From Paragordius varius (lineage: Eukaryota > Animalia > Nematomorpha): DNA of 64,000 bases. Shown here piece by piece: positions 6,209-52,207 of the stretch. Positions within the stretch are counted from its first letter, which is position 1; each line of letters opens with the position of its first letter. The notes under the pieces were generated by a model. It was given only the letters and a program-made list of their open reading frames with translations, did no database searches and had not been told where the DNA came from. A program made the position numbers and the translations under genes. The DNA is taken from positions 8,680,001-8,744,000 of the forward strand of contig OZ176056.1 of NCBI GenBank assembly GCA_964247055.1, in the 5' to 3' direction.

Positions 6209-6321
6209 AAGGTTTCGACTTTGTGGGCTAGGGTTAGGGTGAGGGATTGGAGTTGGTTCATTTTCTAAAAGAAGTCCGCAGGACTTCCTCGGGCTGCGAA
6301 GCAGGCCGAGACCCACGCATT
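6209..6321 (+). mobile_element. ~113-bp G4 + double GNA-hairpin cassette (candidate non-autonomous rolling-circle, Helitron/Helentron-like terminus); G-rich strand on +
   Basis: GGGCTAGGGTTAGGGTGAGGG, then hairpins GAAGTCC-GCA-GGACTTC and CTCGGGCTGC-GAA-GCAGGCCGAG, ending ACCCACGCATT. Five full and three partial copies in the window, both orientations. The repeat is certain; the TE class is inferred. Confidence 0.55.
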
Positions 6322-7070: not shown

Positions 7071-7135
7071 AAGGCTTTCAACTTTGTGGACTAGGGTTAG
7101 GGTGAGGGATTGGAGTTGGTTCATTTTCTTAAAGA
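7071..7135 (+). repeat. Truncated cassette copy (telomere-like half only, hairpins missing)
   Basis: CTAGGGTTAGGGTGAGGGATTGGAGTTGGTTCATTTTCTTAAAGA, then unrelated sequence; equivalents at 34021-34089 and 52956-53034. Confidence 0.85.
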
Positions 7136-11637: not shown

Positions 11638-14600
11638 TTTTTCACGCATGTAAACACATGCTTTTAATCGAGTGGGAAAGGTATGGTATACCTACCCATC
11701 TCTTATCGATCTTTTTACCAAAAACATTGATTTTTACCTTCTCCGAATATTAGAAATAGTTAGATCCTATTCCTTACATATCCATAACATATTTCCTATT
11801 CACATTCTTTCATTCGAAGGACATTCTGCTAATGTTGAAATCACGCAATCTCAGCATCCGCATCGCCACATGGAATTTACGCGGATCCTACAAAAACCAC
11901 AAACTAGATATTGTCGTTAACGAGATGACTAAGCATAAAATTGACATACTAGGAATTTCAGAATCACACATCCCCTCTACCGGAACCTTAGAATTCGACA
12001 ATCATATTTTATATTATTCCGGCCACGACTCATCAAAATACAACGGTGTCGGCATAATAATGAACAAAAAACTAGCTAACTTATCGGACATTTTTAATCC
12101 AATCAATGATCGTATTATCGCAATCCGCATACAAACAACCCCTCAACCCATTACTATCCTCCAAATTTATGCACCTACCTCCTCTTACAGCGATGACGAC
12201 TGTGAAAAATTTTATAGCGATCTCGACTTGGCGATTTCCCAAATTTCAAAAAAGGATATCATATTTATCTTAGGCGATTTTAATTCAATCATCGGAACAG
12301 ACAAAACACCTCCTATGACGGGCGGCATGGGCTTGGGCATAAAAAACGAGAGAGGAGACAGATTGATTGAATTTTGTGCTAACCATCGTTTCTTCGTCGC
12401 AAACAGCTTTTTTAAACAGCCCAAACGACGTCTATACACATGGCGTTCCCCGTGTCAAAGATACCGTAACCAGATTGACTTCATATTAGCTATGGTAAAA
12501 TACAAAAGTTCATTTCAAAATTTCAAATGCCTACCAGGATCGGATGCTACAGCGACCACAACCTATTGATCGCCAAACTCCGAATTAAATTACAACTTCC
12601 TAAAACATCCAAACCCACAAGAACAAGATTAGATTATGATACAATCGACGACAAGTTTAGCACCGCTTTATCAAATCGTTTCGATTGTCTTGATCATAAT
12701 TCCGAAAACTATCAGGATATAAACTTCTTTTGGAACGATATATATACAATCTGCCGAGACACAGCCGACGAATTCATTCGGCCTCTCAAACGCAATAAAA
12801 ATAAAATAAAATTGTCAGCCAAAAGTCTCGAGATCGCAGAAAAGCGTAGAGACTCAAAAACCAAATGCAAATGGGATAAATACAAACAACTAAACAGTGA
12901 ATTTCAGAAGAGTGCAAGAGAGGACACAAATAAGTATTATGACCAACTATGTGAAAAATTAGAAACAGACGCCAAAAATAACCAAAACCTCTTTGCCCAT
13001 GCAAACAATATATTCCACACAAAAAAGTTTTTTATAAGGGACCTATGAGAAACGACAACAACTCAATCGTCACTGAAAAAGACGAAATTCGCAAACTATG
13101 GCACAAACATATAAACAAACTATACAATGTAATTAATCCCCCAACTATTAACGAACTTACTAAACAAAAAGAACCACCTATTATGAAAGAAGAAGTGGAA
13201 CTCGCCATAAAACACTCTAGCACCGGTAAATCAGAGGGCCACAAAGACATCCCTACTGAAATAATAAAATACATTCCAATCGATATACTCAAACTTTTTC
13301 AAATCATATTTGAGATGGAAAAAATTCCTGAGGATTGGTGTACATCCATTATGATTCCGATTTTAAAAAAAGGGTAACCCAGAACTGTGTGACAACTATC
13401 GCACCATAGCGCTCATAAACCAGGTGTCCAAAGTTTTTCTAAAAATAAAACAATTTCGTCTAAATTCCATTCTTGACCCCGAAATATCCACGATTCAGGC
13501 TGGTTTTCGAAAAGGTAGAGGATGCCGAGATATGATATGTAACATGAGGTGGATAATCGAGAAACACATCGAATTTAACAAAGAATTGCATATGTGCTTT
13601 GTCGATTTTTCCAAAGCATTTGATTCCATCCAGCACAATAAACTACGGAAAGCTCTAAAACAACTCGGAGTATCAACACATTTAATCAACATAGTATTTT
13701 CAATTTATTCAAATTTCATGGCTGTAGTATCTACACCATACGGTATATCTGACCCATGTAGGGTACAAGTCGGCCTCCATCAAGGATGCGTTTTATCACC
13801 AATTCTTTTTAACGCATACCTGGCATTATAAGAAATATCCCACAAACTTACGGCATCAACGTAGGTGGGAACCTACTTACATCCGTTCACTACGCGGATG
13901 ATACAGTCTTATTCGCAGACAGTCTAGACACATTATCGCAAGCTTTGCAAGTGTTTACAACTGAATGCAATAAATTTGGATTAAATATCAATTTAAAAAA
14001 AACAAAAGTCATGCAAATAAATCCGGCTCAAACCAATCCAATAATCCTCAGCGGCAACCAGATCGAAACAGTTAGCAGCTACACGTACTTAGGTAGCATT
14101 ATTAATAATGAGAACAACTCTACGCCTGAAATAAAGCGAAGAATTGCTATTGCTAAAGCAGTAACTTTTAAATACAACAGGATTTGGATGTCACATGACA
14201 TTAAACTACAAACCAAAATCAGATTAATCAAAGCTACAGTTTTCCCCACATTCATGTATGGGGGGGGGGGGGGGGGAAAGCTGGACACTGAAAAAATATG
14301 ATGAACGTCTAATAAATTCTTTCGAATTATGGGTTTGGAGAAAACTTCTTCAAACAAAATGGACAGACAAAGTTTCAAACACCACCATTCTAAATAAAAT
14401 AAACCCAGAAATGTCACTTCTTGGCAGCTTAACACGGCAAAAACTCTCCTTCTTCGGGCACATCATGAGATTCAGCTCACTCGAAAAATCACTGATGCTG
14501 GGGAAAGTGAGTGGTGCCCGAAAAAGAGGGAGTAGACGAACTCGTTGGATGGATAACATCCTTAAAGAAACCAACCTATCCTTATCCGACCTAAACACCA

Positions 14601-14686
14601 AAACCGGAAATCGCAATGAATGGAGAAGCTATATTTTCAATGTTGCAATTAGTCGGAATCCACTTTAGCAAACAACAACAACAACA
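11638..14686 (+). mobile_element. Near full-length RTE-clade LINE (~3.05 kb) with AP endonuclease and reverse transcriptase, disrupted by frameshifts and stops
   Basis: EN motifs IATWNLRGS, GISESH, GDFNS, NQIDFI. RT motifs QAGFRKGRGCRD, FVDFSKAFDS, QGCVLSP and YADD (13891-13902). C-terminal FFGHIMR..G.R.RG..RTRWMD. (CAA)n tail at 14669-14686. Absent at the equivalent site 57560/57561. Confidence 0.95.
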
Positions 14687-14894
14687 ATGATTTATATTAG
14701 CCCAAAAACACCTAATTTATTTGTAGGATGAATTTGAATTGTTCAAGGGTGAATTTTATCTTAATGGTATAAAAAATATCATTCTTTAATGTATATATCT
14801 TGATTGAAAAATGTATAAGGCAGGGTTTTTTTATTTTTAAGGCATATAATAAAAAATTTATTTGCATTTATTATGGTAATTGGTGGATATCTTA

Positions 14895-15818: not shown

Positions 15819-16552
15819 AATTTAAATACTAATGTGAACCATTGATCTCAATTGTTAAAATAAAAAAATTTATGCAAAATTTTCTTAAAAATATTTTTTC
15901 CACAAATATCTAAAAACCATAAAACTCATCCAGTTAATAAAATAAAACTGTTGAATAATAAATTATTAATGATTGTGTAGCATCAAAAAATTGTCATTCG
16001 ATTGTTTGTAAATATAATCCTAATTAGTGAAACGTAAATAAATGATAACTACTATATAAAGGTTAAAAAAATTTGAGATGTGTTGGTTAAAAACTTGGTA
16101 AATTATGATAATTAAAATTGAAAACCCATACCACAATTATTTAATTATTTGATGGTAAAGTGCGTCGGTTTAAATCGTGTAGCTCCGAGAACTCTATGAA
16201 AAATTTCAGAATTTGTTAAGTTTTACATTTGCAACTCGTTGCATTTTAAAAAAAATAATCAAATTTAAACTGTTATATGACCTTTAAATGGGTCATTTTT
16301 TGTATTTTTAAAATATTAATTATTAAATGCCTATTTTTGAATTAATTTTTTAAAAAACCAGCGCCCCTTCAACTATGGGGCCAGGTGCTTCAGCCCCCTT
16401 TCTCCCCGATCTAGCTACAACATTTTTCCAAGTATTTCCGCATGAAACTTTTAGCTATCGAATGATATATGATTCTTAAAGAAATTTTTGATTGCCATTT
16501 TCGGCAAAGAAAGTTAAAAAACATTAACATTTATATATATTATATGACATAC

Positions 16553-17403
16553 CTCCCAAGTCAATGAGCAGTGTTTTAGTCCGGTTTTTGGAAAGATTTT
16601 CCCAGCCTGTTATATTTTTAAGTCCCGAATGGTAGGCTGAGAAGTAATGTAATGCTGGTAAATTCGACAACTCTGAAATATTTAAGGAATCAAATCGATT
16701 GTAATTCAAAATTATTTGTTCAATTGATTCATTATATGCAACGTTTGTAAAGTCAACGGAGGTGATATTACTTCTGATATAAAGGGTTTTTAAATGGGGC
16801 CATTTTACAATCAGTTTCAAGTCTCGCAACCCCAAAACATATAAATCTAAAAATTCAATATTATTTGATTTCATAAATAAGTCGGGAGTAACCGTAAAAT
16901 AGATGAGGGTCAAAGATTTTAGGGTTTTAGGGAAATATTGTGCAGAGTTTATTATGTTTGTATCACGACGACTCATAGTTCTGCCTTTTATGGTTAAGGA
17001 GCGAATCATAGGGAATTTTTGCAATATGTCAGATAAATCATAATGATCTTCCGACGCGTACAAAATCACTTATTTCGCGTTTAAATTTTTAGCACCAAAA
17101 GTTTTTGTGTATGTAATCACCTCAAGAGTTTCCAATCTAGGCAAATAAGCTTGCATGGCACTATCATTTGTTGCGTATAGAGTTAATCTCTTTATGCTTG
17201 AGTGATTAATATGACCTACCAAACTAACTTTTTCAAGGTATAAAGTTACGTTTTGCAACATTGGAAAGAGATGTAAAATGGTCCAATTGAAATCTTTCCC
17301 AAAACCTAATATTTTAAGATCAATCGATTCAACCATTTTATGTGTCGAAGACAATACCTTTAACAACTCATATGTATGATTAATATTTGCATCGTAATCT
17401 CGA
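16553..17403 (-). pseudogene. 5'-truncated duplicate of LRR gene exon 3 with a nonsense codon
   Basis: Near-identical to 59630-60480; GAA>TAA at 17070-17072 (NAK*VIL versus NAKEVIL); upstream part replaced at 17404 by block D. Confidence 0.92.
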
Positions 17404-17844
17404 TTGGATATTTTAATATTCCGTAAAGTGAATCCCTCATTCAAAATGTATTGCGTTGGTGGATAGCACTTGAATGTACTGGTCATTTAGAACAAAAAGA
17501 TTTATAATTTTAAACATCATGTAAATGGTTCATCTGATTTATATGAAGTTGTGAGTCACATGTGTTAATTTTAATTCTTCGACTGTGCATAGCAAAATAG
17601 ATAATAAACAGAGCAAAATATTTATATATGCTAAGCAATTTGGCTGTTTTAAAATATAAAGATTGCATCTAATTTTAACATAACGTAAATAGTATAGTCT
17701 AAATTCTTTAAATATAAGGCTTAAAATGCGGCCTCCGTTTTATAAAGTTGCGACCGTAAATATAGGCCCGTCAGCAGACAGAACCGTCAATAATTCAAAT
17801 ATAATTGATTGAAAGCAACTATGATCGCAATCAGAAAAATATTT

Positions 17845-19498: not shown

Positions 19499-19611
19499 AA
19501 TGCGTGGGTCTCGGCCTGCTTCGCAGCCCGAGGAAGTCCTGCGGACTTCTTTAAGGAAATGAACCAACTCCAATCCCTCACCCTAACCCTAGCCCACAAA
19601 CTCGAAATCCT
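19499..19611 (-). mobile_element. G4 + double-hairpin cassette, inverted copy
   Basis: AATGCGTGGGTCTCGGCCTGCTTCGCAGCCCGAGGAAGTCCTGCGGACTTC..CCCTCACCCTAACCCTAGCCCAC is the reverse complement of 6209-6321. Confidence 0.55.
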
Positions 19612-22169
19612 AAAAGTTTTTTACCCCTTATTGTAAAATAAATTTTTGCTAAATACCTTAAAATCCCTACCATTAAAAAGCCATTGATCATGTGTTTAGT
19701 ATGTTTATTACATGTAAACCATAAAATAAAACAGTTTAATTAGCAATGTTTACTAGAAATCAAGAGAAAAGGCCATTCATTAAAAGCAAAAATATTTTAA
19801 GAATAAATGATCAAGAACTATTACATGAAAACGAACATAATAGAAAGCATTTTCAATTACAATATCCATTTAAATGGTTGTTTATTTCATACCATAGTAG
19901 GGCAATTCTCAACACAGTAGTGTATGGAAAAACCATACAAAGACTTTAATAAACCATTATTTTCTTCCTTTTTTCCATACAGTACTATTGTGTTGCAATT
20001 TGCCTTACTATTATAGAAATAAGCAACCATTAAAACATATATTGTAATATAAATTTAAATTAACTGAACACGTTTGAAAAACATCGCCATAGAGATAAAA
20101 GTATTTATCGACAATAATTAAAGAAAATTCTTAAAGAGATATAAATTAAAATGACAAATAAGACCATTGTTCAAAGTTATTTGAAAAAATGTAATTTATT
20201 CAAAAAATTCATTAAAAAACTATAATAAAGGTATATTAAATATTATTTAAATTATGGTATAAATTTATCACCTAATCAATAAAAGTGAATCAAAATATTA
20301 TTCAATAAACTTGGGATTTATAAGAAAATAAAAATAAAAACATTTTACAATAATTTAAATTAATGAATTATTAGTGATAAAAAGGTAAGTATTCTAATAT
20401 ATTCATTAAAATTAGTTATTTAAAATATAATTATTTATAAAAATTACTAAACTAAAAAGAGGTATATTATCTATTTTCTTAATAAAAAACAGCTGAAAAA
20501 ACTAGTTACCAAAATTTTAATATTAAACTTAAAATTAATGAAATTTTAAATATACAAAAAATCATTAGTTAAAAAGTCTTTAATTTAAATTTGTTTATAA
20601 TTGGTGATAAAAAATTTAATTTATATTAATTTTATTTTTACGTTTGACAAATATTACTTGTAGTAATCAAAAATTTTTATAGTTATCAAAAATATAATTA
20701 TCTAAACAGCTGACCATGAAAATTGGTTATTTAATACACTGTAAGACAGAAAAACAGATAAATACAATATTTTAAGTTGATAAAAAAGAGATTCTTATCA
20801 ATAGATTACTATAGAAATATTCTAAATTAGTTGTTTGTTGTTCTTATATCTTAGCAAAAATTCTTTAAGAGCCAAAATTTTGAAAAACTCAGGTAACTTT
20901 ATAAAAAAATATTTAAATAATGGTTAAGATATACCATAATAACTTTTGAGATTTTGACTTTTCCGCGCACACAATGTTCAGAAACCACATCATTCTAATT
21001 GAATATAAAATAATGTTTAATAATTAAATGCATATTTTTTCTTTAACAGAAATGCTGGTTGTTATATAGTTTTTTCAATCATAGTTAACGGTTTATTAAT
21101 GATATTTAGCGTTGTTTTAAAAAAATGTGTTCACAAAAACATTATAGCGGTTATTTCTTATTTATTACTAATTAACAAAAAATAAATAAATTGATTAATA
21201 TTTAGCTTTTATAGGAAAAAAACAAATTAACTATTTATTTCTAATAAAATTTAGCGTTTTTTGATGAAAATTAGGTTAAATGTAATCATTTATATAAGAA
21301 TGAAAAACATAGTTTTGAAAATATCAAAAACAAACAGCTGTTACGGCTAATTCAATTAAATTGAAAAAAACATATATATTTAGCTAAAATTCTGCTAAAA
21401 AAATTTTTTTTATACTGCCCTGTAGTTTTTCAAAATTATCTTACAGTAATTTATATCAGCTGATTTTTAATAAATATTGGAGAATAATTATTAAATTTGG
21501 CTGTTTTAATAAAAAAATAGTAATTGCATAATTTGGCTGTAGTTAAAAAAATTTATAAAAAAATATCAGTTTTTAATTATAATTGAACTGTATTATAAAG
21601 GATATCAACATAACTCTCCTATTAGAAATAGCTAGGGGTTTATTGGTATATAACTATATTATTAAAATCCAACTGTTTCTTAGCGATTAAATAACTTATA
21701 AGACCAGGATTTTAATTAGGTTATTTATATGCAAATTCAAATTTTTAAAAGGAGCTCTGTAGTTTTTTTAAAAAATATAAGCTAATTAACGGGTATAAAA
21801 ATTTAAGCTTTTTACAAAAAATTTACTCTTTAAAAACCTAATTAATCAACTTTTTTTATAAATGTGGCATTTGGATAATTAAAGTAAAAATAAATACCAA
21901 ATTCCGAAATATTCAAGGCTTACATTTTTTATTACGATTCGTTTCAGTTTTTGCGCAAATAATCGATTAAGGCAACGCATTTCTATATTAATATAAGGTA
22001 AAAATTATAAATTGTTATATAAAAATATATTATTAAACAGTATTTTTAATAAATCAACTGTATAAATTAATCATCAGTTAAAAGAAACCATAAATAATCA
22101 ACTGTACAAATAAATAAACTGTTTTAAATATTATGAACTATTTAGATAAATTAAATAAATCAGCTGATA

Positions 22170-23440
22170 TATAAACAACTGAATAATAAAACAACTGAAT
22201 AATAAAACAACTGAATAATAAAACAACTGAATAATAAAACAACTGAATAATAAAACAACTGAATAATAAAACAACTGAATAATAAAACAACTGAATAATA
22301 AAACAACTGAATAATAAAAACAACTGAATAATAAAAACAACTGAATAATAAAAACAACTGAATAATAAAAACAACTGAATAATAAAAACAACTGAATAAT
22401 AAAAACAACTGAATAATAAAAACAACTGAATAATAAAAACAACTGAATAATAAAAACAAATGAATAATAAAAACAACTGAATAATAAAAACAACTGAATA
22501 ATAAAAACAACTGAATAATAAAAACAACTGAATAATAAAAACAACTGAATAATAAAAACAACTGAATAATAAAAACAACTGAATAATAAAAACAACTGAA
22601 TAATAAAAACAACTGAATAATAAAAACAAATGAATAATAAAAACAAATGAATAATAAAAACAACTGAATAATAAAACAACTGAATAATAAAACAACTGAA
22701 TAATAAAACAACTGAATAATAAAACAACTGAATAATAAAACAACTGAATAATAAAACAACTGAATAATAAAACAACTGAATAATAAAACAACTGAATAAT
22801 AAAAACAACTGAATAATAAAAACAACTGAATAATAAAAACAAATGAATAATAAAAACAAATGAATAATAAAAACAAATGAATAATAAAAACAAATGAATA
22901 ATAAAAACAACTGAATAATAAAAACAACTGAATAATAAAAACAACTGAAGAATAAAAACAACTGAATAATAAAAACAACTGAATAATAAAAACAACTGAA
23001 TAATAAAAACAACTGAATAATAAAAACAACTGAATAATAAAAACAACTGAATAATAAAAACAACTGATTAATAAAAACAACTGATTAATAAAAACAACTG
23101 ATTAATAAAAACACCTGATTAATAAAAACAACTGAATAATAAAAACAACTGAATAATAAAAACAACTGAATAATAAAAACAACTGAATAATAAAAACAAC
23201 TGATTATCTAAACAACTCATTATTTAAACAACTGATTAATTAAAACAACTGATTAATTAAAACAGGTTGAATAAAAACAAATGATTAATTAAAACAACTG
23301 GTTGAAAATCAAAACAAATGATTAATTACAACAAATGATTAATTACAACAAATGATTAATTACAACAACTGATTGATAAAAACAACTGATTGATAAAAAC
23401 AACTGATTGATAAAAACAAATAATTAATAATGACAACTGA
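22170..23440 (+). repeat. ~17-bp satellite, array II (~1.27 kb)
   Basis: Long pure runs of 16- and 17-bp monomers; these account for the three overlapping minus-strand ORFs in the track. Confidence 0.98.
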
Positions 23441-23924
23441 TAAATTAAAAAAACTGCTTAATAAAAATAACTGATAAATTAAAAAACCTGAAATATCAAA
23501 ACAACTCAAATTAAAAAACAAATATTTTAAAAAATTTTAAAACATTTAATATAACTATAATATTAATCAAGAATTTGAATTATTAAACTGTAAAAAATTA
23601 CCAATTCAAAAATATCAAGCCAAAATCTTTTGCTTTACGATTTGTTTGAGTTTTTGCGCAAATAATTGATTGAGGCAACACATTCTAAAAAAATAATGAA
23701 AATATATAAATTGAATATAAACGATTAATTACATTATAATAATTCAAAAAAACGCTATTTAAGAATGAATGATATGTTTTGTGTTTAATTATCTAAAAAA
23801 CCAATTTGCTGGCATTCAAGTAATTTTGCCGAATTGAGCGAATTAATATTTATAATGGAAGCATTTTTTTAAACTTTCCGATTTGTAGAATTATTATAAG
23901 TACAAAATTTGGGTTTATAGGCAT

Positions 23925-26900
23925 ATTTTTAACCGATTACCAAATTTTAAGAAAATTTTAACCGATTTTAGCAAATCTTAAGAAAACTTTAACCGATTTT
24001 TAGCAAATTTCAGGGAAACTTTAACCGATTTTTAACAAAACTTAAGGAAACTTTAACCGATTTTTAGCAAATTTTAGGGAAACTTTAACCGATTTTTAGC
24101 AAAACTTAAGGAAACTTTAACCGATTTTTAGCAAATTTTAGGGAAACTTTAACCGATTTTTAGCAAATTTTAGGGAAACTTTAACCGATTTTTAACATTA
24201 AGGAAACTTTAACCGATTTTTAGCAAATTTCAGGGAAACTTTAACCGATTTTTAACAAAACTGAAGGAAACTTTAACCGATTTTTAGCAAATTTCAGGGA
24301 AACTTTAACCGATTTTTAACAAAACTGAAGGAAACTTTAACCGATTTTTAACAAAACTGAAGGAAACTTTAACCGATTTTTAGCAAATTTTAGGGTAACT
24401 TTAACCGATTTTTAACAAAACTGAAGGAAACTTTAACCAATTTTTAGCAAATTTTAAGGAATCTTTAACCGATTTTTAGCCTATTATAAGGAAACTTTAA
24501 CTGATTATTAGCAAATTTTAAGGAAACTTTAACCGATTTTTAGCCTATTATAAGGAAACTTTAACCGATTTTAGCAAATTTTAGGGAAACTTTAACCGAT
24601 TTGTAGCAAATTTTAAGGAAATTTTAACCGATTTTTAACAAAACTGAAGGAAACTTTAACCAATTTTTAGCAAATTTTAAGGAAACTTTAACCGATTTTT
24701 AGCAAATTTCAGGGAATCTTTAACCGATTTTTAACAAAACTGAAGGAAACTTTAATCGATTTTTAACAAAACTTAAGGAAACTTTAACCGATTTTTAGCA
24801 AATTTTAAGGAATCTTTAACCGATTTTTAGCAAATTTTAAGGAAATTTTAACCGATTTTTAGCCTATTATAAGGAAACTTTAACCGATTATTAGAAAATA
24901 TTAAGAAAACTTTAACCGATTATTAGCCTATTATAAGGAAACTTTAACCGATTTTAGCAAATTTTAGGGAAACTTTAACCGATTTTTAGCAAATTTTAAG
25001 GAAACTTTAATCGATTTTTAACAAAACTTAAGGAAACTTTAACCGATTTTTAGCAAATTTCAGGGAAACTTTAACCGATTTTTAACAAAACTGAAGGAAA
25101 CTTTAACCGATTTTTAGCAAATTTTAAGGAATCTTTAACCGATTTTTAGCAAATTTTAAGGAAATTTTAACCGATTTTTAGCCTATTATAAGGAAACTTT
25201 AACCGATTATTAGAAAATATTAAGAAAACTTTAACCGATTATTAGCCTATTATAAGGAAACTTTAACCGATTTTAGCAAATTTTAGGGAAACTTTAACCG
25301 ATTTTTAGCAAATTTTAAGGAAACTTTAATCGATTTTTAACAAAACTTTAGGAAACTTTAACCGATTTTTAGCAAATTTCAGGGAAACTTTAACCGATTT
25401 TTAACAAAACTGAAGGAAACTTTAACCGATTTTTAGCAAATTTTAAGGAATCTTTAACCGATTTTTAGCAAATTTTAAGGAAATTTTAACCGATTTTTAG
25501 CCTATTATAAGGAAACTTTAACCGATTATTAGAAAATATTAAGAAAACTTTAACCGATTATTAGCCTATTATAAGGAAACTTTAACCGATTTTAGCAAAT
25601 TTTAGGGAAACTTTAACCGATTTTTAGCAAATTTTAAGGAAACTTTAATCGATTTTTAACAAAACTTAAGGAAACTTTAACCGATTTTTAGTAAATTTTA
25701 AGGAAATTTTAGCAAATTTTGAAAAATTTTAACCGATTTAACATATTTTAAGAAAACATTAACCGATTTTAGCAAATTTTAAGATAATTTTAACCGATTA
25801 TTAGCAAATTTTAAGAAAATTTTAACTGATTATTAGAAAATATTAAGAAAACTTTAAGCGATTATTAGCAAATTTTAAGATAATTTTAACCGATTTTTAG
25901 CAAATTTTAAGGAAACTTTAATCGATTTTTAACAAAACTTAAGGAAACTTTAACCGATTTTTAGCAAATTTTAAGGAATCTTTAACCGATTTTTAGCAAA
26001 TTTCAGGGAAACTTTAACCAATTTTTAGCAAATTTTAGGGAAACTTTAACCGATTTTTAACATTAAGGAAACTTTAATCGATTTTTAACAAAACTTAAGG
26101 AAACTTTAACCGATTTTTAGCAAATTTCAGGGAAACTTTAACCGATTTTTAACAAAACTGAAGGAAACTTTAACCAATTTTTAGCAAATTTTAAGGAATC
26201 TTTAACCGATTTTTAACAAAACTTAAGGAAACTTTAACCAATTTTTAACAAAACTTAAGGAAACTTTAACCAATTTTTAGCAAATTTTAGGGAAACTTTA
26301 ACCGATTTTTAACAAAACTTAAGGAAACTTTAACCGATTTTTAGCAAATTTCAGGGAAACTTTAACCGATTTTTAACAAAACTTAAGGAAACTTTAACCA
26401 ATTTTTACCAAATTTTAAGAAAATTTTAACCGATTTTAGCAAATCTTAAGAAAACTTTAACCGATTTTTAGCAAATTTTAAGAAAACTTTAATCGATTTT
26501 TAACAAAACCTAAGGAAACTTTAACCGATTTTTAGCAAATTTCAGGGAAACTTTAACCGATTTTTAACAAAACTTAAGGAAACTTTAACCGATTTTTAGC
26601 AAATTTCAGGGAAACTTTAACCGATTTTTAACAAAACTGAAGGAAACTTTAACCGATTTTTAACAAAACTGAAGGAATCTTTAACCGATTTTTACCAAAT
26701 TTTAAGAAAATTTTAACCAATTTTAGCAAATCTTAAGAAAACTTTAACCAATTTTTAGCAAATTTTAGGGAAACTTTAACCGATTTTTAACATTAAGGAA
26801 ACTTTAACCGATTTTTAGCAAATTTTAAGGAAATTTTAACCGATTTTTAACAAAACTTAAGGAAACTTTAACCGATTTTTAGCAAATTTTAGGGAAACTT

Positions 26901-29900
26901 TAACCGATTTTTAACAAAACTGAAGGAAACTTTAACCGATTTTTAACAAAACTGAAGGAAACTTTAACCGATTTTTAGCAAATTTTAAGGAAATTTTAAC
27001 CGATTTTTAACAAAACTTAAGGAAACTTTAACCGATTTTTAGCAAATTTTAGGGAAACTTTAACCGATTTTTAACAAAACTGAAGGAAACTTTAACCGAT
27101 TTTTAACAAAACTGAAGGAAACTTTAACCGATTTTTAACAAAACTGAAGGAATCTTTAACCGATTTTTAACAAAACTTAAGGAAACTTTAACCAATTTTT
27201 AGCCTATTATAAGGAATCTTTAACCGATTTTTAGCCTATTATAAGGAAACTTTAACCGATTTTAGCAAATTTTAGGGAAACTTTAACCGATTTTTAGCAA
27301 ATTTTAAGGAAACTTTAATCGATTTTTAACAAAACTTTAGGAAACTTTAACCGATTTTTAGCAAATTTCAGGGAAACTTTAACCGATTTTTAACAAAACT
27401 TAAGGAAACTTTAACCGATTTTTAGTAAATTTTAAGGAAATTTTAGCAAATTTTGAAAAATTTTAACCGATTTTTAGCAAATTTTGGGGAAATTTTAACC
27501 GATTTTTAGCATATTATAAGGAAACTTTAACCGATTTTTAGCAAATTTTAAGGAATCTTTAACCGATTTTTAGCAAATTTTAAGGAAATTTTAACCGATT
27601 TTTAGCCTATTATAAGGAAACTTTAACCGATTATTAGAAAATATTAAGAAAACTTTAACCGATTATTAGCCTATTATAAGGAAACTTTAACCGATTTTAG
27701 CAAATTTTAGGGAAACTTTAACCGATTTTTAGCAAATTTTAAGGAAACTTTAATCGATTTTTAACAAAACTTAAGGAAACTTTAACCGATTTTTAGTAAA
27801 TTTTAAGGAAATTTTAGCAAATTTTGAAAAATTTTAACCGATTTTTAGCAAATTTTGGGGAAATTTTAACCGATTTAACATATTTTAAGAAAACATTAAC
27901 CGATTTTAGCAAATTTTAAGATAATTTTAACCGATTATTAGCAAATTTTAAGAAAATTTTAACTGATTATTAGAAAATATTAAGAAAACTTTAAGCGATT
28001 ATTAGCAAATTTTAAGATAATTTTAACCGATTTTTAGCAAATTTTAAGGAAACTTTAATCGATTTTTAACAAAACTTAAGGAAACTTTAACCGATTTTTA
28101 GCAAATTTTAAGGAATCTTTAACCGATTTTTAGCAAATTTTAAGGAAATTTTAACCGATTTTTAGCAAATTTCAGGGAAACTTTAACCAATTTTTAGCAA
28201 ATTTTAGGGAAACTTTAACCGATTTTTAACATTAAGGAAACTTTAATCGATTTTTAACAAAACTTAAGGAAACTTTAACCGATTTTTAGCAAATTTCAGG
28301 GAAACTTTAACCGATTTTTAACAAAACTGAAGGAAACTTTAACCAATTTTTAGCAAATTTTAAGGAATCTTTAACCGATTTTTAACAAAACTTAAGGAAA
28401 CTTTAACCAATTTTTAACAAAACTTAAGGAAACTTTAACCAATTTTTAGCAAATTTTAGGGAAACTTTAACCGATTTTTAACAAAACTTAAGGAAACTTT
28501 AACCGATTTTTAGCAAATTTCAGGGAAACTTTAACCGATTTTTAACAAAACTTAAGGAAACTTTAACCAATTTTTAGCAAATTTTAAGGAAACTTTAACC
28601 GATTTTTAGCAAATTTCAGGCAAACTTTAACCGATTTTTAACAAAACTGAAGGAAACTTTAACCGATTTTTAACAAAACTGAAGGAATCTTTAACCAATT
28701 TTTACCAAATTTTAAGAAAATTTTAACCGATTTTAGCAAATCTTAAGAAAACTTTAACCGATTTTTAGCAAATTTTAAGAAAACTTTAATCGATTTTTAA
28801 CAAAACCTAAGGAAACTTTAACCGATTTTTAGCAAATTTCAGGGAAACTTTAACCGATTTTTAACAAAACTTAAGGAAACTTTAACCGATTTTTAACAAA
28901 ACTTAAGGAAACTTTAACCGATTTTTAGCAAATTTCAGGGAAACTTTAACCGATTTTTAACAAAACTGAAGGAAACTTTAACCGATTTTTAACAAAACTG
29001 AAGGAATCTTTAACCGATTTTTACCAAATTTTAAGAAAATTTTAACCGATTTTAGCAAATCTTAAGAAAACTTTAACCAATTTTTAGCAAATTTTAGGGA
29101 AACTTTAACCGATTTTTAACATTAAGGAAACTTTAACCGATTTTTAGCAAATTTTAAGGAAATTTTAACCGATTTTTAACAAAACTTAAGGAAACTTTAA
29201 CCGATTTTTAGAAAATTTTAGGGAAACTTTAACCGATTTTTAACAAAACTGAAGGAAACTTTAACCGATTTTTAACAAAACTGAAGGAAACTTTAACCGA
29301 TTTTTAACAAAACTGAAGGAATCTTTAACCGATTTTTAACAAAACTTAAGGAAACTTTAACCAATTTTTAGCCTATTATAAGGAATCTTTAACCGATTTT
29401 TAGCCTATTATAAGGAAACTTTAACCGATTTTAGCAAATTTTAGGGAAACTTTAACCGATTTTTAGCAAATTTTAAGGAAATTTTAACCGATTTTTAACA
29501 AATTTTAAGGAAACTTTAACCGATTTTTAGCAAATTTCAGGGAATCTTTAACCGATTTTTAACAAAACTGAAGGAAACTTTAACCAATTTTTAGCAAATT
29601 TTAAGGAATCTTTAACCGATTTTTAGCAAATTTTAAGGAATCTTTAACCGATTTTTAGCAAATTTTAAGGAAATTTTAACCGATTTTTAGCCTATTATAA
29701 GGAAACTTTAACCGATTATTAGAAAATATTAAGAAAACTTTAACCGATTATTAGCCTATTATAAGGAAACTTTAACCGATTTTAGCAAATTTTAGGGAAA
29801 CTTTAACCGATTTTAGCAAATTTTAGGGAAACTTTAACCGATTTTTAGCAAATTTTAAGGAAACTTTAACCAATTTTTAGCAAATTTTAAGGAATCTTTA

Positions 29901-30246
29901 ACCGATTTTTAGCAAATTTTAAGAAAACTTTAACCTATTATTAGCAAATTTTAAGAAAACTTTAACCGATTATTAGCAAATTTTAAGAAAACTTTAACCG
30001 ATTATTAGCCTATTATAAGAAAACTTTAACCGATTTTTAGCCTATTATAAGGAAACTTTAACCGATTTTAGCAAATTTTAAGGAAATTTTAACCGATTTT
30101 TAGGCAAATTAGTAAAAAACTTTAACGCATTTTTAGCATATTTTAACCGATTTTTAGCTAAATTTAAGAAAATTTTAACCGTTTTTAGGAATTGTTAAGA
30201 AAGAAACTTTAACCGATTTTTTTTAAGGTAACTTTAACCGATTTTT
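23925..30246 (+). repeat. ~32-bp satellite, array II (~6.3 kb, ~195 monomers) with higher-order repeats
   Basis: Same core as array I; marker variants recur at 319-bp and ~2.1-kb periods. Confidence 0.98.
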
Positions 30247-33164: not shown

Positions 33165-33271
33165 AAGGTTTCGACTTTGTGGGCTAGGGTGAGGGATTGG
33201 AGTTGGTTCATTTTCTAAAAGAAGTCCGCAGGACTTCCTCGGGCTGCGAAGCAGGCCGAGACCCACGCATT
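33165..33271 (+). mobile_element. G4 + double-hairpin cassette (one TAGGGT unit shorter)
   Basis: GGGCTAGGGTGAGGGATTGGG still has four GGG tracts; hairpins identical to the other copies. Confidence 0.55.
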
Positions 33272-35299
33272 ATCTTACTATTTATACCTTATATTTATAA
33301 TTAATTTTTTACTTAAATACAAAGATCCCAATAAAAAATTATTAATAATACAGAGTTAGGTATTGAATTTTATTGGGAAATAATTGGAGATCCGTTCTAG
33401 TATTAGTAAATAAGAACAATGGATTAAACATTTTTTTTAGCTGTACTGCAAACATTACATAACATGTTTACATTAATTTTTATTACCCAAATCCTTAATA
33501 TATATCATATAGTTTAGGAATCCTTATTTTTAACTTCTTAATAAAAATTTTGTGTTAGGTACAAATTGTCATTCTATATTCTGCTTATTGATTTAATCAG
33601 CTTTAGTTTGTACTTCATCTTAATTTAATCTATTTAAATTTTATATAAATTATAAAGAGATGTCTTTATTTGTATTTAAAAATTAAATCTTTGAAAAATA
33701 GGGCCTTATCCAAACTAGACCACCTATATTTAAAAATAAAAATTTAATTCGAAACATAGTTAAATTTAAAACTTATTTCGTTTTTAATTATATATTAATA
33801 GCATTTTAAGTTTGATTCATTACTAATTTTAAAATTGATTAAGGTCCTAGAATTGAATTTAGGTATCTGTAGGAAAAATTGTGCATTGCTCTAAGTTACA
33901 TGGTTTGAAGAATAAAATGTCAAGTAAACGAATTATATATTTATTTCTATATGTGTAAGACTCATTTCATATGTTTTTGGGATGAAATAACCCTAACCAA
34001 CTCATATTTGGAAAAACTTTAAGGCTTTCGACTTTGTGGACTAGGGTTAGGGTGAGGGATTGGAGTTGGTTCATTTTCTTAAAGAAGTCACCCTTCATCC
34101 AATTTAAAGAGGTTCATGAATATTATTTGCTAAATCTGTGTTTTCCTATTATAAATTTAATTAAACTCACTATGACATCGCTTATATGTAAATATAAAAA
34201 AATATTTTTATCAAACCTGGATACTATCGCAACAAAACCATTTATGAATTTAAATCGAAGAATTGTTTATAATATAGTATTTTCATCATAAATTCTTAAT
34301 TCAAAATGGTGTTTTATACGAAAATAAATTTCCAGATTACGCAAATTAGTAGTAGAGGAAAATCAATGATATAAGCGTTCAGTCCGATATAAGGGATTGC
34401 AATTGTTTTAGGGTAAAAGAAGACTTGTAAGCAATAAAGTGCTTATAAAATTTAATTTTAAATTTTTCTAATAAATTTGATCAAAATAATTGTAAATATC
34501 GAAGTTAATACTCTAATATATATATATATATAAAATTACTAATGATGGATAAGAGGATTTGATTTGTCAAATTACCTATGAATGTAAAATAGTTAGTTTA
34601 AAACCGAATAATATTAGTGAGCAAATCCTAAAATGATAAAATATGTTTATTGGAGAATGAATATAAGTTAAAGTTTAATTAATTATAGTTATACTTACCC
34701 AAGGTATAATATACAAGAGGCATCAATACAATTTAAATATTAAATAGCCATATTATAAAAATTTATTTATATTCTCATCTTTATCGGAGACAAAAATATT
34801 TTTTCATGTCATACCACATAAATAATTATATTAAAAAATTAACATTAACGATATAAGTTAATTTTTAACTAATTCCAAATTTTTTAATCCAAATTCATTT
34901 CTCTTTTGCTAGGTGGTATTCATACATACATAAATTCAAAAATTTGCTTCACAATACTAAATTCGGACAGGATGGTTCATTATATGTCTACTTTGTTTCG
35001 GAAAAGTTATGGCTTTTTGAATGCGTTTAGTTGAAAATATTTTACATTTTTCAATGGATATCACAGAATTATGACAAACTAAAAACTTTAATTTGTTGTG
35101 GAAAGCAAATGTGAGCCTGATTCCGTATTAAATTTGGAAATTAACTCAAATTGTATGGATCTTGCAGTGAGTAGCAAATATAATTGTTTATTTATTTTTG
35201 CGTTCTATTTTGGACTTTATATAAGGATTATTTTCTTTAAAAAACTTAAAATATATACGCAAATTTTTATATATTTTTTTGTTTTGAGTATTATTTTAG

Positions 35300-38946: not shown

Positions 38947-41900
38947 TTGGATATTTTAATATTCCGTAAAGTGAATCCCTCATTCAAAATGTATTGCGTT
39001 GGTGGATAGCACTTGAATGTTAGAACAAAAAGATTTATAATTTTAAACATCATGTAAATGGTTCATCTGATTTATATGAAGTTGTGAGTCACATGTGTTA
39101 ATTTTAATTCTTCGACTGTGCATAGCAAAATAGATAAACAGAGCAAAATATTTATATATGCTAAGCAATTTGGCTGTTTTAAAATATAAAGATTGCATCT
39201 AATTTTAACATAATGTAAATAGTATAGTCTAAATTCTTTAAATATAAGGCTTAAAATGTGGCCTCCGTTATATAAAGTTGCGACCGGAAATATTATCCCG
39301 TCAGCAGACAGAACCGTCAATAATTCAAATATAATTGATTGAAAGCAACTATGATCGCAATCAGAAAAATATTTATAAGTAAAGGGTGGTGAGAAACTCA
39401 TATTCGAAGGCTTGAGGCCTTCTTCTCAAATGGCAACAAGGGATGGGGACATGAATGAAACCAAGCAGCAAGGATTGCCGGATTAAAGGATTACGAGGTA
39501 AATATATTGTTTAGGTGTATTGGGAGAAACTTTATTGGGGAGGCGTTCACGACGGCGCTGTGCAAAGGAGCTACCCAACCAGAAGCCCTGAATCGAGGTC
39601 CTGGACTTGGGAATGGCCTATCAATGGGATGACATATGGGAAAGAGGTAAACCTAATGTTTAGGTGGGATGGATGGCCTTTTGGGGATTCTTGAGACGGA
39701 GCTTGTCAAGCCAGCACTACCCCTGATGATCAAAACAAGCTACTTGGGAGCAGGCTTGGTTGTTGGATGGCGACTTGCTCGGATCAAACAACACTGCTAC
39801 TTGGAGGATGGCATTCTGTTGAATGCACAACAAACTCTCATTTTACTTGTGGAGAGTTTTTGGGCCAAATGACTCTCTAGTGGGAGAATATTTCCTCCTT
39901 TGGGGAAATCAACTCTTGTTATTTTGAGAGAGTTGTTTTCTCCAAACGTGTGAAGGAGGAGGATTTATTTCTCCCATTAGAGAGAGTGAGTCAGGCCCCC
40001 AAGTCCAAAATTCGATTTTGTGCACTCTTACTCCCGGACGCTCAAAATAAAATTTTGGACTTAGAATATTTTTTAATTTTTTTTTCTCGCCCTTTGGGGG
40101 GGGGGTTATATATATTTATTTATATTTTTTAATTTTTTTTCAAAAAATATAAGATAAAGTAAACATTATTTATTGACAATAATTATATAAAATATTCATT
40201 TTTCTGTTTGTTTTCATTCTTGTCTTGTTGGTTATTAATGATCAACGTTTTGAGATTATGGTTTAATTGTATTCGTATTTTTGTAAGTATTTTCGTGTCT
40301 TGTTGGTTATTCATGATCAACGTTTTTAGATTATGGTTTTCTTGTATATTCTGATTCTATAAAAATTAATAAACATTAGTTTTAGAAATTAAATTTTCAA
40401 TGTTACCACAAACTAATTCAACCTAGTATATCAATTTTTACTATTTTTTACAATATTGTCAATTAATTATTAAATTTAACCTTTATTTTATGATTGTCAT
40501 TATAGAACTAATATTGGGATCAATATAAACCGCTAAAATTAAAATCAACAAATTTGAAATCATTTAATGTTAACCTAAAACAATAAAATCAGTTTAAAAA
40601 CCAATATTTTTATTCTTTTGAATTTAAATGCTAAAAAAATATGAGTTGGACAAGTTTTTAACAATTTTATTTATATTCAAAATTAGCAGTTTTACAACCA
40701 AATAAACTATTTTTTACCGATTTTGGCTATTAATATGTTTGTAAGAAAAAATAAAAATAATATGAGCTATTTTTAAAAAAAATAAATATATTAATTAAAT
40801 GCTGTCTAGCACATCAAATATCAATTTACCAAGGAATTATTTATTTCAAACCAGTAAATTAAAAAATTGAGGTAGATTTAGGTAATTGAATTTAGATATA
40901 AAAAATGGTAAACAAATCATAAAACAAACAGTGTTAGGGTCAAAACAAATTTAGGAAGGCAATAATATCCTACCTATTATAAAATTATTTATTCAATGAT
41001 TAAAAAACAAGTATTTCAACTATGGGATCATTTTAAACAATTCCTCTTATCAATTAATTAAAAAGAAATGCGTGGGTCTCGGCCTGCTTCGCAGCCCGAG
41101 GAAGTCCTGCGGACTTCTTTAAGGAAATGAACCAACTCCAATCCCTCACCCTAACCCTAGCCCACAAACTCAAAACCCTAAAAGTTTTTTACCCCTTATT
41201 GTAAAATAAATTTTTGCTAAATACCTTAAAATCCTTACCATTTAAAAACCATTGATCATTTGTTTAGTATGTTGTAATTCGCAGAACAGTAGTGTATGGA
41301 AAAACCAACAAACAATGTGTTCATAAACCATTATTTTCTTTCATTTTTCCATACACAACTGTTGTGTTGCAATTTGCCTTACTATAGTGTGAAATAAGCA
41401 ACAATATATTATAATATAAAAATTAATTGAAAACATTTGAAAGACACCGCCATATAGATTGATAAATTAGCAAATTATGACAATAATTAAAGAAAATTAA
41501 ACAGATATGAATTGGTATTATTTACCAAATTTTAGTTAGTTGTCTCAAAATGACATATAAGACCATTGTTAAGTAATCAAAGTTATTTAAAAATTAGGGT
41601 ATAAAATATTTAAAAAAAATAATACCTAATCAATAAAAGTGAATAAAAATATTTTTAAATAACCTTGAGATTTAAGAAAATAAAAAATAAGGATAAAAAC
41701 ATTTTACAATAATTTAAATATATGTATTATATTAGTGATAAAAAGGAAGTATATTTATTTAATATATTCATTAAAATTAGTTATTTAAAATAAAATTTTA
41801 TAAAAAAATTAGTAAACTATATTTAAAAGTAAAGGTAATATAATTATTTATTTTCTAAATAAAAAACAGCTGAAAAAACTAGTTACCAAAATTTTAATAT

Positions 41901-43569: not shown

Positions 43570-43910
43570 AATAACAACTGATTAATTAAAACAACTTATT
43601 AATTAAAACAACTTATTAATTAAAACAACTTAATAATTAAAACAACTGATTAATTAAAACAACTGATTAATTAAAACAAGATTAATTAAAAACAACTGAT
43701 TAATTAAACTGGTTAATAAAAACAACTGATTAATTAAACAACTGATTAATTAAACTGGTTAATAAAAACAACTGATTAATAAAAACAACTGATTAATAAA
43801 AACAACTGATTAATAAAAACAACTGATTAATAAAAACAACTGATTAATAAAAACAACTGATTAATAAAAACAACTAATTATTAAAAACAACTAATTAATA
43901 ATGACAACAA
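43570..43910 (+). repeat. ~17-bp satellite, array III (short, ATTAAT-type variants only)
   Basis: ATTAATAAAAACAACTG and ATTAATTAAAACAACTG monomers; the long GAATAATAAAA run of arrays I and II is absent. Confidence 0.93.
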
Positions 43911-44402
43911 TTAAAAAAACTGTTTAATAAAAATAACTGATAAATTAAAAAACCTGAAATATCAAAACTCAAATAAAAAAACAAATATTTTAAAAAATAT
44001 TTTAAAAAATATTTTAAAACATTTAATATAATATTAATCAAGAATTTTAATTATTAAACTGTAAAAAATTACCAAATCCAAAAATATCAAGCCAAAATTT
44101 TTTGCTTTACGATTTGTTTCAGTTTTTGCGCAAATAATTGATTGAGGCAACACATTCTAAAAAAATAATCAAAATAAATAAATTGATAAATATAAACGAT
44201 TAATTACAATATAATAATTCAAAAAAACGCTATTTAAGAATGAATGATATGTTTTGTGTTTAATTATCTAAAAAACCAATTTGCTGGCATTCAAGTAATT
44301 TTGCCGAATTGAGCGAATTAATATATATAATTTAAGCATTTTTTTTTAAACTTTCTGATTTTTAGAATTATTATTAGTACAACATTTGGGTTTATATGCA
44401 TA

Positions 44403-47400
44403 TTTTTAACCGATTAGCAAATTTTTAGAAAATTTTAAGGAAACTTTAACCGATTTTTAGCAAATTTTAAGAAAACTTTAACCGATTATTAGCAGATTTT
44501 AAGGAAACTTTAACCGATTTTTAACAAATTTTAAGAAAACTTTAACCGATTATTAGCAAATTTTAAGAAAACTTTAACCGATTATTAGCCTATTATAAGA
44601 AAACTTTAACCGATTTTTAGCCTATTATAAGGAAACTTTAACCGATTTTAGCAAATTTTAAGGAAATTTTAACCAAATTTTAGCATATTTTAAGAAAACT
44701 TTAACCGATTATTAGCAAATTTTAAGAAATTTTAACCGAATATTAGCAAATTTTAAGTAAACTTTAATCGATTTTTAGTAAATTTTAAGGAAATTTTAGC
44801 AAATTTTAAAAAATTTTTAACCGATTTTTAGCAAATTTTGGGGAAATTTTAACCGATTTAACATATTTTAAGGAAACTTTAACCGATTTTAGCAAATTAT
44901 TAGATAATTTTAACCGATTTTTAGCCTATTATAAGGAAACTTTAACCGAGATTATTAGCAAATTTTAAGGAAACTTTAACCGATTTTAGCAAATTTTAAG
45001 AAAACTTTAACCGATTATTAGCCAATTTTAAGGAAACTTTAACCGATTATTAGCAAATTTTAAGAAATTTTAACCGATTTTTAGCAAATTTTAAGGAAAC
45101 TTTAACCGATTTTAGCAAATTTTAAGAAATTTTAAGAAAACTTTAACCAATTATTAGCAAATTTTAAGAAAACTTTAACCGATTATTAGCAAATTTTAAG
45201 AAAATTTAAACCGATTATTAGCAAATTTTAAGAAAACTTTAACCGATTATTAGCAAATTTAAGGAAACTTTAATCGATTTTTAGCCTATTATAAGGAAAC
45301 TTTAACCGATTATTAGCAAATTTTAAGAAAACTATAACCGATTTTACCAAATTTTAAGATAATTTTAACCGATTATTAGCAAATTTTAAGGAATCTTTAA
45401 CCGATTTTTAGCAAATTTTAAGAAATTTTAACCGATTTTTAGCAAATTTTAAGGAAACTTTAACCGATTTTAGCAAATTTTAAGAAATTTTAAGAAAACT
45501 TTAACCAATTATTAGCAAATTTTAAGAAAACTTTATCCGATTATTAGCAAATTTTAAGAAAACTATAACCGATTTTACCAAATTTTAAGATAATTTTAAC
45601 CGATTTTTAGCAAATTTTAAGAAAACTTTAACCGATTATTAGCAAATTTTAAGAAAACTTTAACCGATTATTAGCAAATTTTAAAAAAATTTTAACCGAT
45701 TTTAGCAAATCTTAAGAAAACTTTAACCGATTTTAGCAAATCTTAAGAAAACTTTAACCGATTTTTAGCAAATTTTAGAAAACTTTAACCGATTTTTAGC
45801 CTATTATAAGAAAACTTTAACCGATTTTTAGCCTATTATAAGGAAACTTTAACCAATTTTTAGCAAATTTTAAGGAATCTTTAACCGATTTTTAGCAAAT
45901 TTTAAGGAAATTTTAACCGATTTTTAACAAAACTTAAGGAAACTTTAACCGATTTTTAGTAAATTTTAAGGAAATTTTAGCAAATTTTGAAAAATTTTAA
46001 CCGATTTTTAGCAAATTTTGGGGAAATTTTAACCGATTTAACATATTTTAAGGAAACTTTAACCGGTTTTAGCAAATTTTAAGATAATTTTAACCGATTA
46101 TTAGCAAATTTTAAGAAAATTTTAACCGATTTTTAACCGATTTTTAGCAAATTTTAAGAAAACTTTAACCGATTATTAGCAAATTTTAAGATAATTTTAA
46201 CCGATTTTTAGCCTATTATAAGGAAACTTTGACCGATTATTAGAAAATTTTAAGAAAACTTTAACCGATTTTAGCAAATTTTAAGATAATTTTAACCGAT
46301 TTTTAGCAAATTTTAAGGAAACTTTAATCGATTTTTAACAAATTTTAAGGAAACTTTAACCGATTTTTAGCAAATTTCAGGGAAACTTTAACCGATTTTT
46401 AACAAAACTGAAGGAAACTTTAACCAATTTTTAGCAAATTTTAAGGAATCTTTAACCGATTTTTAGCAAATTTTAAGGAAATTTTAACCGATTTTTAACA
46501 AAACTTAAGGAAACTTTAACCGATTTTTAGTAAATTTTAAGGATATTTTAGCAAATTTTGAAAAATTTTAACCGATTTTTAGCAAATTTTGGGGAAATTT
46601 TAACCGATTTAACATATTTTAAGATAATTTTAACCGATTTTTAGCAAATTTTTAGCAAATTTTAAGAAAACTTTAACCGATTTTTAGCAAATTTTAAGAA
46701 AACGTTAAGCGATTTTTAGCCTATAAGAAAACTTTAACCGATTTTTAGCCTATTATAAGGAAACTTTAACCGATTTTTAGCCTATTATAAGGAAACTTTA
46801 ACTGATTATTAGCAAATTTTAAGGAAACTTTAATCGATTTTTAACAAAACTTAAGGAAACTTTAACCGATTTTTAGTAAATTTTAAGGATATTTTAGCAA
46901 ATTTTGAAAAATTTTAACCGATTTTTAGCAAATTTTGGGGAAATTTTAACCGATTTAACATATTTTAAGATAATTTTAACCGATTTTTAGCAAATTTTTA
47001 GCAAATTTTAAGAAAACTTTAACCGATTTTTAGCAAATTTTAAGAAAACGTTAAGCGATTTTTAGCCTATAAGAAAACTTTAACCGATTTTTAGCCTATT
47101 ATAAGGAAACTTTAACCGATTTTTAGCCTATTATAAGGAAACTTTAACTGATTATTAGCAAATTTTAAGGAAATTTTAACCGATTTTTAACAAAACTTAA
47201 GGAAACTTTAACCGATTTTTAGCAAATTTTAGGGTAACTTTAACCGATTTTTAACAAAACTGAAGGAAACTTTAACCAATTTTTAGCAAAACTGAAGGAA
47301 TCTTTAACCGATTTTTAGCAAATTTTAAGGAAACTTTAATCGATTTTTAACAAATTTCAGGGAAACTTTAACCGATTTTTAACAAAACTGAAGGAAACTT

Positions 47401-52094: not shown

Positions 52095-52207
52095 AAGGTT
52101 TCGACTTTGTGGGCTAGGGTTAGGGTGAGGGATTGGAGTTGGTTCATTTTCTAAAAGAAGTCCGCAGGACTTCCTCGGGCTGCGAAGCAGGCCGAGACCC
52201 ACGCATT
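52095..52207 (+). mobile_element. G4 + double-hairpin cassette
   Basis: Same as 6209-6321. Confidence 0.55.

Follow-up and report, generated by a model that had tools for sequence, protein, structure and literature searches.

Helitrons of the Helibat/Helraiser type carry a palindrome 11 nt upstream of their CTAG-3' end and insert between A and T. In Helraiser, this palindrome has been shown experimentally to be the terminator of transposition and to act on single-stranded DNA, and bypass of the terminator results in read-through, capture of flanking DNA and the formation of new 3' ends (PMC4778049). A different association has been described for Paramecium, in which the germline chromosomes are capped by Helitrons that possess internal satellites and occur together with telomere repeats in a fixed polarity (Arnaiz et al., 2026, PMC13085455). 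In this case C-strand telomere repeats flank the element after its right end, which is consistent with an insertion into telomeres (PMC13085455).

A cassette of 113 bases in the genome of the nematomorph Paragordius varius shares features with both systems and differs from both. As in Helibat and Helraiser, GC-rich hairpins are positioned just before the end in the homologous termini of the same genome, which display the 11-nt spacing and the junction CTAG|T; these hairpins are also present in the cassette, and non-autonomous copies with heterogeneous internal DNA occur. In contrast to these elements, the cassette contains two abutting hairpins instead of one, lacks a CTRR terminus, is preceded by a telomere-like G tract, and resides inside duplicated host segments, where it looks constrained. 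The likeness to the Paramecium Helitrons consists of a lineage concentrated at chromosome ends that is tied to telomere repeats with a fixed polarity and contains many internal satellites and higher-order repeats. However, the tract of the cassette is short, represents the G strand and lies inside the conserved unit, with the hairpins following 25 bases downstream; in addition, the host is an animal and no intact Rep gene is linked to the cassettes. The loops, GCGAAGC in hairpin 2 and C-GCA-G in hairpin 1, resemble mini-hairpins of the d(GCGAAGC) type in sequence, and the same loops would fold in RNA too. The short, degenerate TTAGGG-like tract away from the chromosome end, which changes in steps of six bases, is reminiscent of interstitial telomeric sequences but, unlike these, belongs to a longer conserved unit with which it is copied.

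The cassette was analyzed in a window of 64 kb, i.e., the whole stretch of DNA under study. The reference copy, which has flank type A, occupies positions 6209-6321 of the plus strand. Its G tract GGG-CTA-GGG-TTA-GGG-TGA-GGG (6225-6245, plus strand), in which other copies show 6-base indels, parses as the degenerate hexamers TGTGGG, CTAGGG, TTAGGG and TGAGGG, the telomere repeat of the genome being TTAGGG. Further downstream on the same strand, hairpin 1 (6271-6287) consists of a perfect 7-bp stem, GAAGTCC/GGACTTC, with a GCA loop, and is directly followed without any spacer (6271-6310 in total) by hairpin 2 (6288-6310), in which 5 bp, a G.G mismatch and 4 bp enclose a GAA loop; both hairpins are common to canonical Helitron 3' ends. 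The layout of four GGG runs, a 7-bp GCA hairpin and an abutting 9-bp GAA hairpin with a G.G mismatch had been described by an earlier sequence-only reading and was confirmed in the sequence. Fold and pairing analysis indicated that GTGGG at 6223-6227 (plus strand) is able to pair with CCCAC at 6312-6316 and thereby to close the cassette by 5-6 bp, and most changes on the 3' side of this pair preserve G.T/G.U pairing. The plus-strand tail ACCCACGCATT (6311-6321) is found in place of ATTCACGCTAG of the canonical Helitron ends, and the CTAG cleavage end is absent.

Four other full cassettes are located within the window: two of flank type A on the plus strand (33165-33271, with a 6-base deletion and only three GGG runs, and 52095-52207) and two of flank type B on the minus strand (19499-19611, with an LRR gene of the same strand about 2 kb further downstream, and 41067-41179). 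A half copy on the plus strand (7071-7135) comprises the G-rich part without hairpins and has evolved like the flanks, and equivalent G-rich half copies devoid of hairpins occur at 34021-34089 and 52956-53024. As had been claimed, the hairpins of the five full copies are identical: the window contains five mismatch-free occurrences of the 37-base hairpin block, compared to 0 expected by chance. Folded as single-stranded DNA, the twin hairpin reached -16.6 kcal/mol (z = -5.5 compared to shuffled sequences). The statement that all five copies keep at least four GGG runs did not withstand inspection, as the copy at 33165 has three and the sequence ATTGGG, supposed to supply the fourth, reads ATTGGAG. 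Thus, four GGG runs are present in four of the five window copies, and the canonical G-quadruplex motif is not kept in all of them. Genome-wide, four different positions of the G tract have undergone 6-base deletions and individual G runs carry mutations in some copies, so that four runs are not strictly kept. Cassettes of types A and B retain their diagnostic differences across the units, and array-specific cassette variants are inherited along with the duplicated units.

A BLAST comparison of the cassette with snRNA and Helitron loci of the same genome returned a match at a Helitron locus and no match to an snRNA. Positions 61-110 of the cassette core are 88-97% identical over 41-50 bases to four loci (L041, L043, L044 and L109), and in the alignment the common block extends from GAAGTCC to CGAGA. 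L041, L043 and L044 are singleton, hairpin-only copies, and L109 represents a canonical end beside Rep relics, about 170 bp from the Rep match. At each of the four ends, a C-rich run is followed by the same two hairpins, by 11 bases ending in CTAG and then by T, with the single mismatch of hairpin 2 being located one position away from that of the cassette. L041 and L044 are 94% identical over 760 bases and diverge directly after CTAG, which identifies them as true element ends. At these two loci (L041:655-700; L044:740-783, minus strand), a poly-C run of 17-21 bases immediately precedes the hairpins, and other ends have CCCCACC-like sequences at this position. A low-complexity tract rich in G or C just upstream of the terminator seems to be a trait of the family. 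The 15-base Helitron terminus CGAGATTCACGCTAG yielded 771 matches in the genome when up to one mismatch was allowed, compared to one match for the reversed control, and the matches are scattered along the chromosomes (e.g., C1:2974609, C3:154514 and C4:3360571). This terminus is the mark of a large Helitron family.

The suggestion that the cassette is related to a Helitron terminus was thus right in substance, given twin hairpins 88-97% identical to 3' ends with 11 bases to CTAG|T, a terminus that is present 771 times in the genome. Judged from this sequence homology, the hairpin half very probably descends from, or is common to, the Helitron right-end signal. The previously proposed search for a Rep-helicase was also carried out and gave a mixed outcome. 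Relics of the Helitron_like_N (Rep) domain were found at about 10 loci, mostly with stops, among them the one close to the canonical end in L109, and the 3'-proximal part of L107 is homologous to the body of L041; however, none of the listed cassettes is near a Rep locus.

The cassette itself differs from the canonical ends. It reads CACGCATT(T) where its relatives read CACGCTAG|T, and it has a degenerate telomere-repeat tract where canonical Helitron ends have a C-rich tract. A CTRR followed by a host T is absent from the cassette, no CTRR common to all contexts occurs downstream, and there was no sign of a target duplication. When the Rep loci were compared, they did not reveal a clear Helitron 5' boundary, and no 5' TC terminus was identified for the cassette within the flanks covered. 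The canonical relatives have a distance of 11 nt between hairpin and end; the cassette has the hairpins, but the element end is not placeable. With regard to Helitron2/Helentron traits, only the inverted GTGGG/CCCAC pair of 5-6 bp flanks the cassette, and its relatives end with CTAG as classical Helitrons do. Homology among the paralogous units passes through the cassette on both sides, indicating that it is not an element boundary in these arrays, and from the sequence its copying appears to be at least partly ordinary segmental duplication. The idea of a Helitron terminus accordingly holds for the hairpin homology, but not for a CTRR end, an identifiable 5' TC end or a position at an element edge instead of inside duplicated segments. 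Likewise, the notion of a single-stranded G-quadruplex-plus-hairpin unit is sound for the hairpin half, since the Helitron right-end signal is read on single-stranded DNA, but the G-rich tract is not part of the canonical ends.

The P. varius assembly comprises 110.6 Mb in 44 contigs with a GC content of about 25%, and (TTAGGG)n telomeres are present at 8 of the 10 contig starts examined. A genome-wide search for copies, as had been proposed, yielded 106 matches for the hairpin block with up to three mismatches allowed, and hence at least 106 full cassettes, and about 157 matches for the G-rich part. The copies form about a dozen clusters, mostly within about 1 Mb of contig ends; those farther away are on C8 (2.0 Mb) and C9 (2.5-3.6 Mb). 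These clusters are arrays of duplicated units of 20-27 kb, which also contain 17-bp and 32-bp satellites, LRR genes and a LINE. The 60 distinct full cassettes fell into 29 flank classes, between which both the upstream and the downstream DNA is unrelated and the core sharply conserved, a pattern typical of Helitron 3' ends. In pairwise alignments, the left end was mostly within a few bases of the core and the right end within about 20 bases, and weaker similarity reaches about 25 bases upstream of the core. Several copies are decayed: identity has fallen to about 74% in L012:2866-2986 and to about 84% in the second copies of L019-L024. The former (C2:15.0257 Mb) is the fourth of four tandem cassettes and has mostly suffered changes from G/C to A/T, whereas its three neighbors match the consensus at 91-97%. 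When metagenome and genome collections were scanned for the exact pattern, only chance matches in GC-rich bacteria resulted, and a full-text literature search for the cassette motif found nothing.

Satellites occur only on the 5' side of the cassettes, at several independent loci and sometimes directly abutting them, i.e., on the side that would be the inside of a Helitron. In the window, the plus-strand cassette at 33165 has a 32-bp satellite (23937-30146) on its 5' side, and the minus-strand cassette at 19499 has a 17-bp satellite (22169-23517) on its 5' side, at a distance of 2.5 kb; at L028/L029, L056, L060 and L079 the 17-bp satellite adjoins or is close to the 5' side of the cassettes. 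Each satellite block is bracketed by cassettes with the G strand directed away from the block. The 17-bp satellite is present three times in the window (22169-23517, 2-491 and 43573-43950), its unit containing CAACTG or CAGCTG flanked by A/T, and is always separated from the 32-bp satellite by a unique spacer of about 420 bp (23518-23936, 492-920 and 43951-44420), which is nearly identical among the three units of the window. Head-to-head Helitron 5' ends were considered for this 420-bp junction, but only AT-rich noise was present there, and a larger terminal inverted repeat around the satellite blocks was dismissed, as the cassette alone is inverted.

Genes encoding LRR proteins are located on the minus strand at 16524-17486, at about 39000-40300 and at 59553-62327, one or two per duplicated unit, each of them preceded at a distance of about 2 kb by a minus-strand cassette; at other loci, no LRR gene was found within 1.5 kb of a cassette. 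One of the three window units also harbors a non-LTR retrotransposon (11672-14700, plus strand), which is broken into several frames and encodes an APE endonuclease domain (Exo_endo_phos, E = 1e-12) and ORF fragments that resemble reverse transcriptase. A SINE or retroposon partner of this LINE was rejected as an identity of the cassette, as there is no tail in common with the RTE-like element at 11.6-14.7 kb.

Constraint on the cassette was determined by comparing 19 type-A paralogs from two chromosomes. Variable columns amounted to 11 of 96 in the core and to 469 of 1251 (37%) in the flanks (p = 5e-8), and the difference persisted when only G/C positions were considered (7 of 55 compared to 155 of 274, p = 8e-10). 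The half copy lacking hairpins was variable at 28 of 68 columns, like the flank. In tandem units that are 73-79% identical, the cassettes are 91-97% identical, and diversity falls sharply at the cassette borders with no gradual rise away from the cassette. These sharp borders, together with the stable type-specific differences, disfavor a general homogenization. Conserved islands across the whole window units could not be discerned, as the three units are too alike. The G-rich half of the full cassettes is as conserved as the hairpins, although canonical Helitron ends are without it.

The hairpins vary in a characteristic manner. Stems displayed fewer minor states per column than loops and the mismatch position (0.60 vs. 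1.12), and hairpin 2 has exactly one internal mismatch in every version. As predicted by the proposal of GNA triloops, loop changes were mostly found at the N of GNA, the middle base being A/T/C in one loop and C/G/T in the other, whereas alterations of the first G were confined to two lineages and the last A was invariant. The recommended stem check therefore supported structure with respect to the lower variability of stems, but not with respect to covariation, which was absent (term 0.03) among copies that are too alike. Taken from the sequence comparisons, the full cassettes look constrained. Possible sources of this constraint are cis selection in repeated rolling-circle copying, co-option by the host (as an RNA gene, a protein-binding or a recombination element) or gene conversion limited to the cassette.

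On balance, we favor the interpretation that the cassette is a terminator module derived from a Helitron lineage at chromosome ends and folding as single-stranded DNA, a reading to which we give somewhat better than even chances. The 3' half of the cassette, i.e., the two abutting GNA-triloop hairpins and about 10 bases, very probably corresponds to the right-terminal stop signal of the dominant Helitron family. In rolling-circle transposition, the Rep-helicase would peel off one strand in 5' to 3' direction; the hairpin would fold in the peeled strand, upon which the enzyme terminates and cuts about 11 bases downstream, as established for Helraiser and assumed by analogy here. The lineage of the cassette lacks the terminal CTAG, and a short degenerate telomere-repeat tract adjoins the signal on the 5' side. 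Elements with the cassette carry satellite arrays on their inner (5') side and are concentrated in duplicated arrays mostly near chromosome ends, and the cassette may serve, or may until recently have served, as a terminator or pause site on the single strand for this lineage. A weakened cut site would favor read-through and the carrying along of neighboring DNA, including LRR genes, and the slow evolution may reflect selection on a cis-acting sequence during repeated copying, or a later co-option by the host. That the cassette is presently active as a terminator is more doubtful than its origin, and we consider this to be a tentative part of the interpretation. In addition, the constraint within immobile host paralogs speaks against the terminator reading, as it is unlike a passive transposon relic and fits a host-level function at least as well as selection at the level of the transposon.

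Such a host-level function may be that of a cis-acting DNA element, co-opted from a Helitron end and an interstitial telomere tract, which acts as a platform for telomere proteins, as a chromatin boundary by the satellites, or as a fragile site of G-quadruplex and hairpins that causes gene arrays close to chromosome ends to recombine ectopically with one another. Within the tract, CTAGGGTTA fits the duplex half-site of vertebrate telomere-repeat-binding proteins, in a genome whose telomere is TTAGGG; most copies are situated within about 1 Mb of contig ends, and the cassette is constrained within host paralogs. The outward-pointing G strands at both sides of each satellite block would also agree with a host element, but the bracketing in the window derives from one unit duplicated several times. 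Mosaic flanks were observed, with the upstream side of L056 being that of L060 and its downstream side that of L014, as crossovers within the cassette would produce; however, unlike in conversion tracts, diversity shows no gradual increase with distance from the cassette, and 113 bases kept nearly base for base are long for a binding site. We therefore regard a co-opted element of this kind as unlikely, although it deserves consideration. A similarly low probability is assigned to a scenario in which the cassette is the animal counterpart of the telomere-associated Helitrons of Paramecium, with a terminator fused to telomere repeats, a lineage specialized for chromosome ends that builds and re-copies satellite and LRR arrays in these regions, and a cassette now maintained by selection in the host, in which it may function as a platform for telomere proteins or as a TERRA-like RNA of short length.

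The cassette may alternatively be a multi-copy gene on the plus strand whose product would be a new structured RNA of small size (about 100 nt), transcribed from an upstream TATA-like box, ending at a T run and having a TERRA-like 5' half of telomere repeats prone to form G-quadruplexes; such a gene may have been co-opted from a Helitron end. The conserved block is sharp, measures about 100-113 bases and has a closing stem of 5-6 bp, its constraint is confined to complete copies, and it lacks codon periodicity and is hence not coding; G.U-compatible changes outnumber A.C changes (12 vs. 6). Counted back from the G of GTGGGC, a TTTATAG/TTTAAAG box begins at about 28-32 bases, the same distance at which the U1, U2, U4, U5 and U6 genes have a TTTATAT box, but TATA-like strings are common in a genome with 75% AT and no snRNA-type PSE-like upstream element is common to all contexts. 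Similarly, 17 of 29 contexts have a run of at least four T in the first 16 bases downstream, compared to 27% in the background (p = 3e-4, the contexts not being fully independent), but type-A copies have no such run. Neither at gathering nor at permissive threshold was an Rfam match obtained, and the stems do not covary (term 0.03). The hairpins are a transposon terminus by homology, so that the structure is explained without any RNA, and the Helitron homology downgrades the small-RNA gene to a weaker rival than the Helitron-derived module, in our view an improbable one. Least probable among the readings is that of an inert relic of a dead Helitron lineage, which would only seem conserved owing to short-tract gene conversion among copies or to recent spread, and would have no function for host or transposon. 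The transposon origin, the decay of several copies (L012:2866-2986 and the second copies in L019-L024) and the inheritance of array-specific variants with duplicated units agree with such a relic. In contrast, type-A and type-B diagnostic differences persist across units, which argues against a general homogenization, diversity declines abruptly at the edges of the cassette, no protection is seen in the GC-rich half copy, and cassettes are 91-97% identical in tandem units otherwise only 73-79% identical.

Other identities of the cassette were rejected. One frame per strand is open in most copies (37 of 52 and 34 of 52, respectively), but variation was evenly distributed over the codon positions (29/27/30) and type-A copies contain an in-frame stop, which speaks against a coding exon. 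Known RNA families (tRNA, snRNA, Y, vault and SL1) were discarded, as there was neither a tRNA call nor an Rfam match: the covariance models of Rfam 15 produced no match at gathering score in the window and only chance-level matches at E values up to 10, and no SL1 spliced-leader RNA was identified among the 50 candidates scored in the genome. Along with these searches, U2 snRNA-like sequences were observed to be amplified (46 matches, among them C1:15223126, C8:6857, C6:8570, C4:7260 and C3:0.26-0.53 Mb). Many of them are located within 10 kb of contig ends or clustered near one end of C3, and in several copies the 5' part is replaced by AT-rich sequence. The snRNA genes at L081-L103 (U1, U2, U4, U5 and U6) have a TTTATAT-like box starting 29-33 bases upstream in all genes found, and an AATTTAG-like box is present 12-25 bases downstream of the U1, U2 and some U5 genes.

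With the Helitron-derived module as the favored reading, a motif of G-quadruplex and hairpins is linked to a concrete mechanism, the terminator of Helitron rolling-circle transposition, and a Helitron family is identified whose 3'-terminal motif has 771 matches in a poorly studied animal genome that is extremely rich in AT. The derived terminator contains telomere-like repeats, is concentrated in duplicated arrays of genes and satellites that mostly lie close to chromosome ends, and has evolved several-fold more slowly than its flanks. If the constraint reflects ongoing use, the arrays would represent a natural case in which Helitrons shape the chromosome-end regions of an animal; if it reflects co-option by the host, the cassette would represent a transposon stop signal that has been domesticated.
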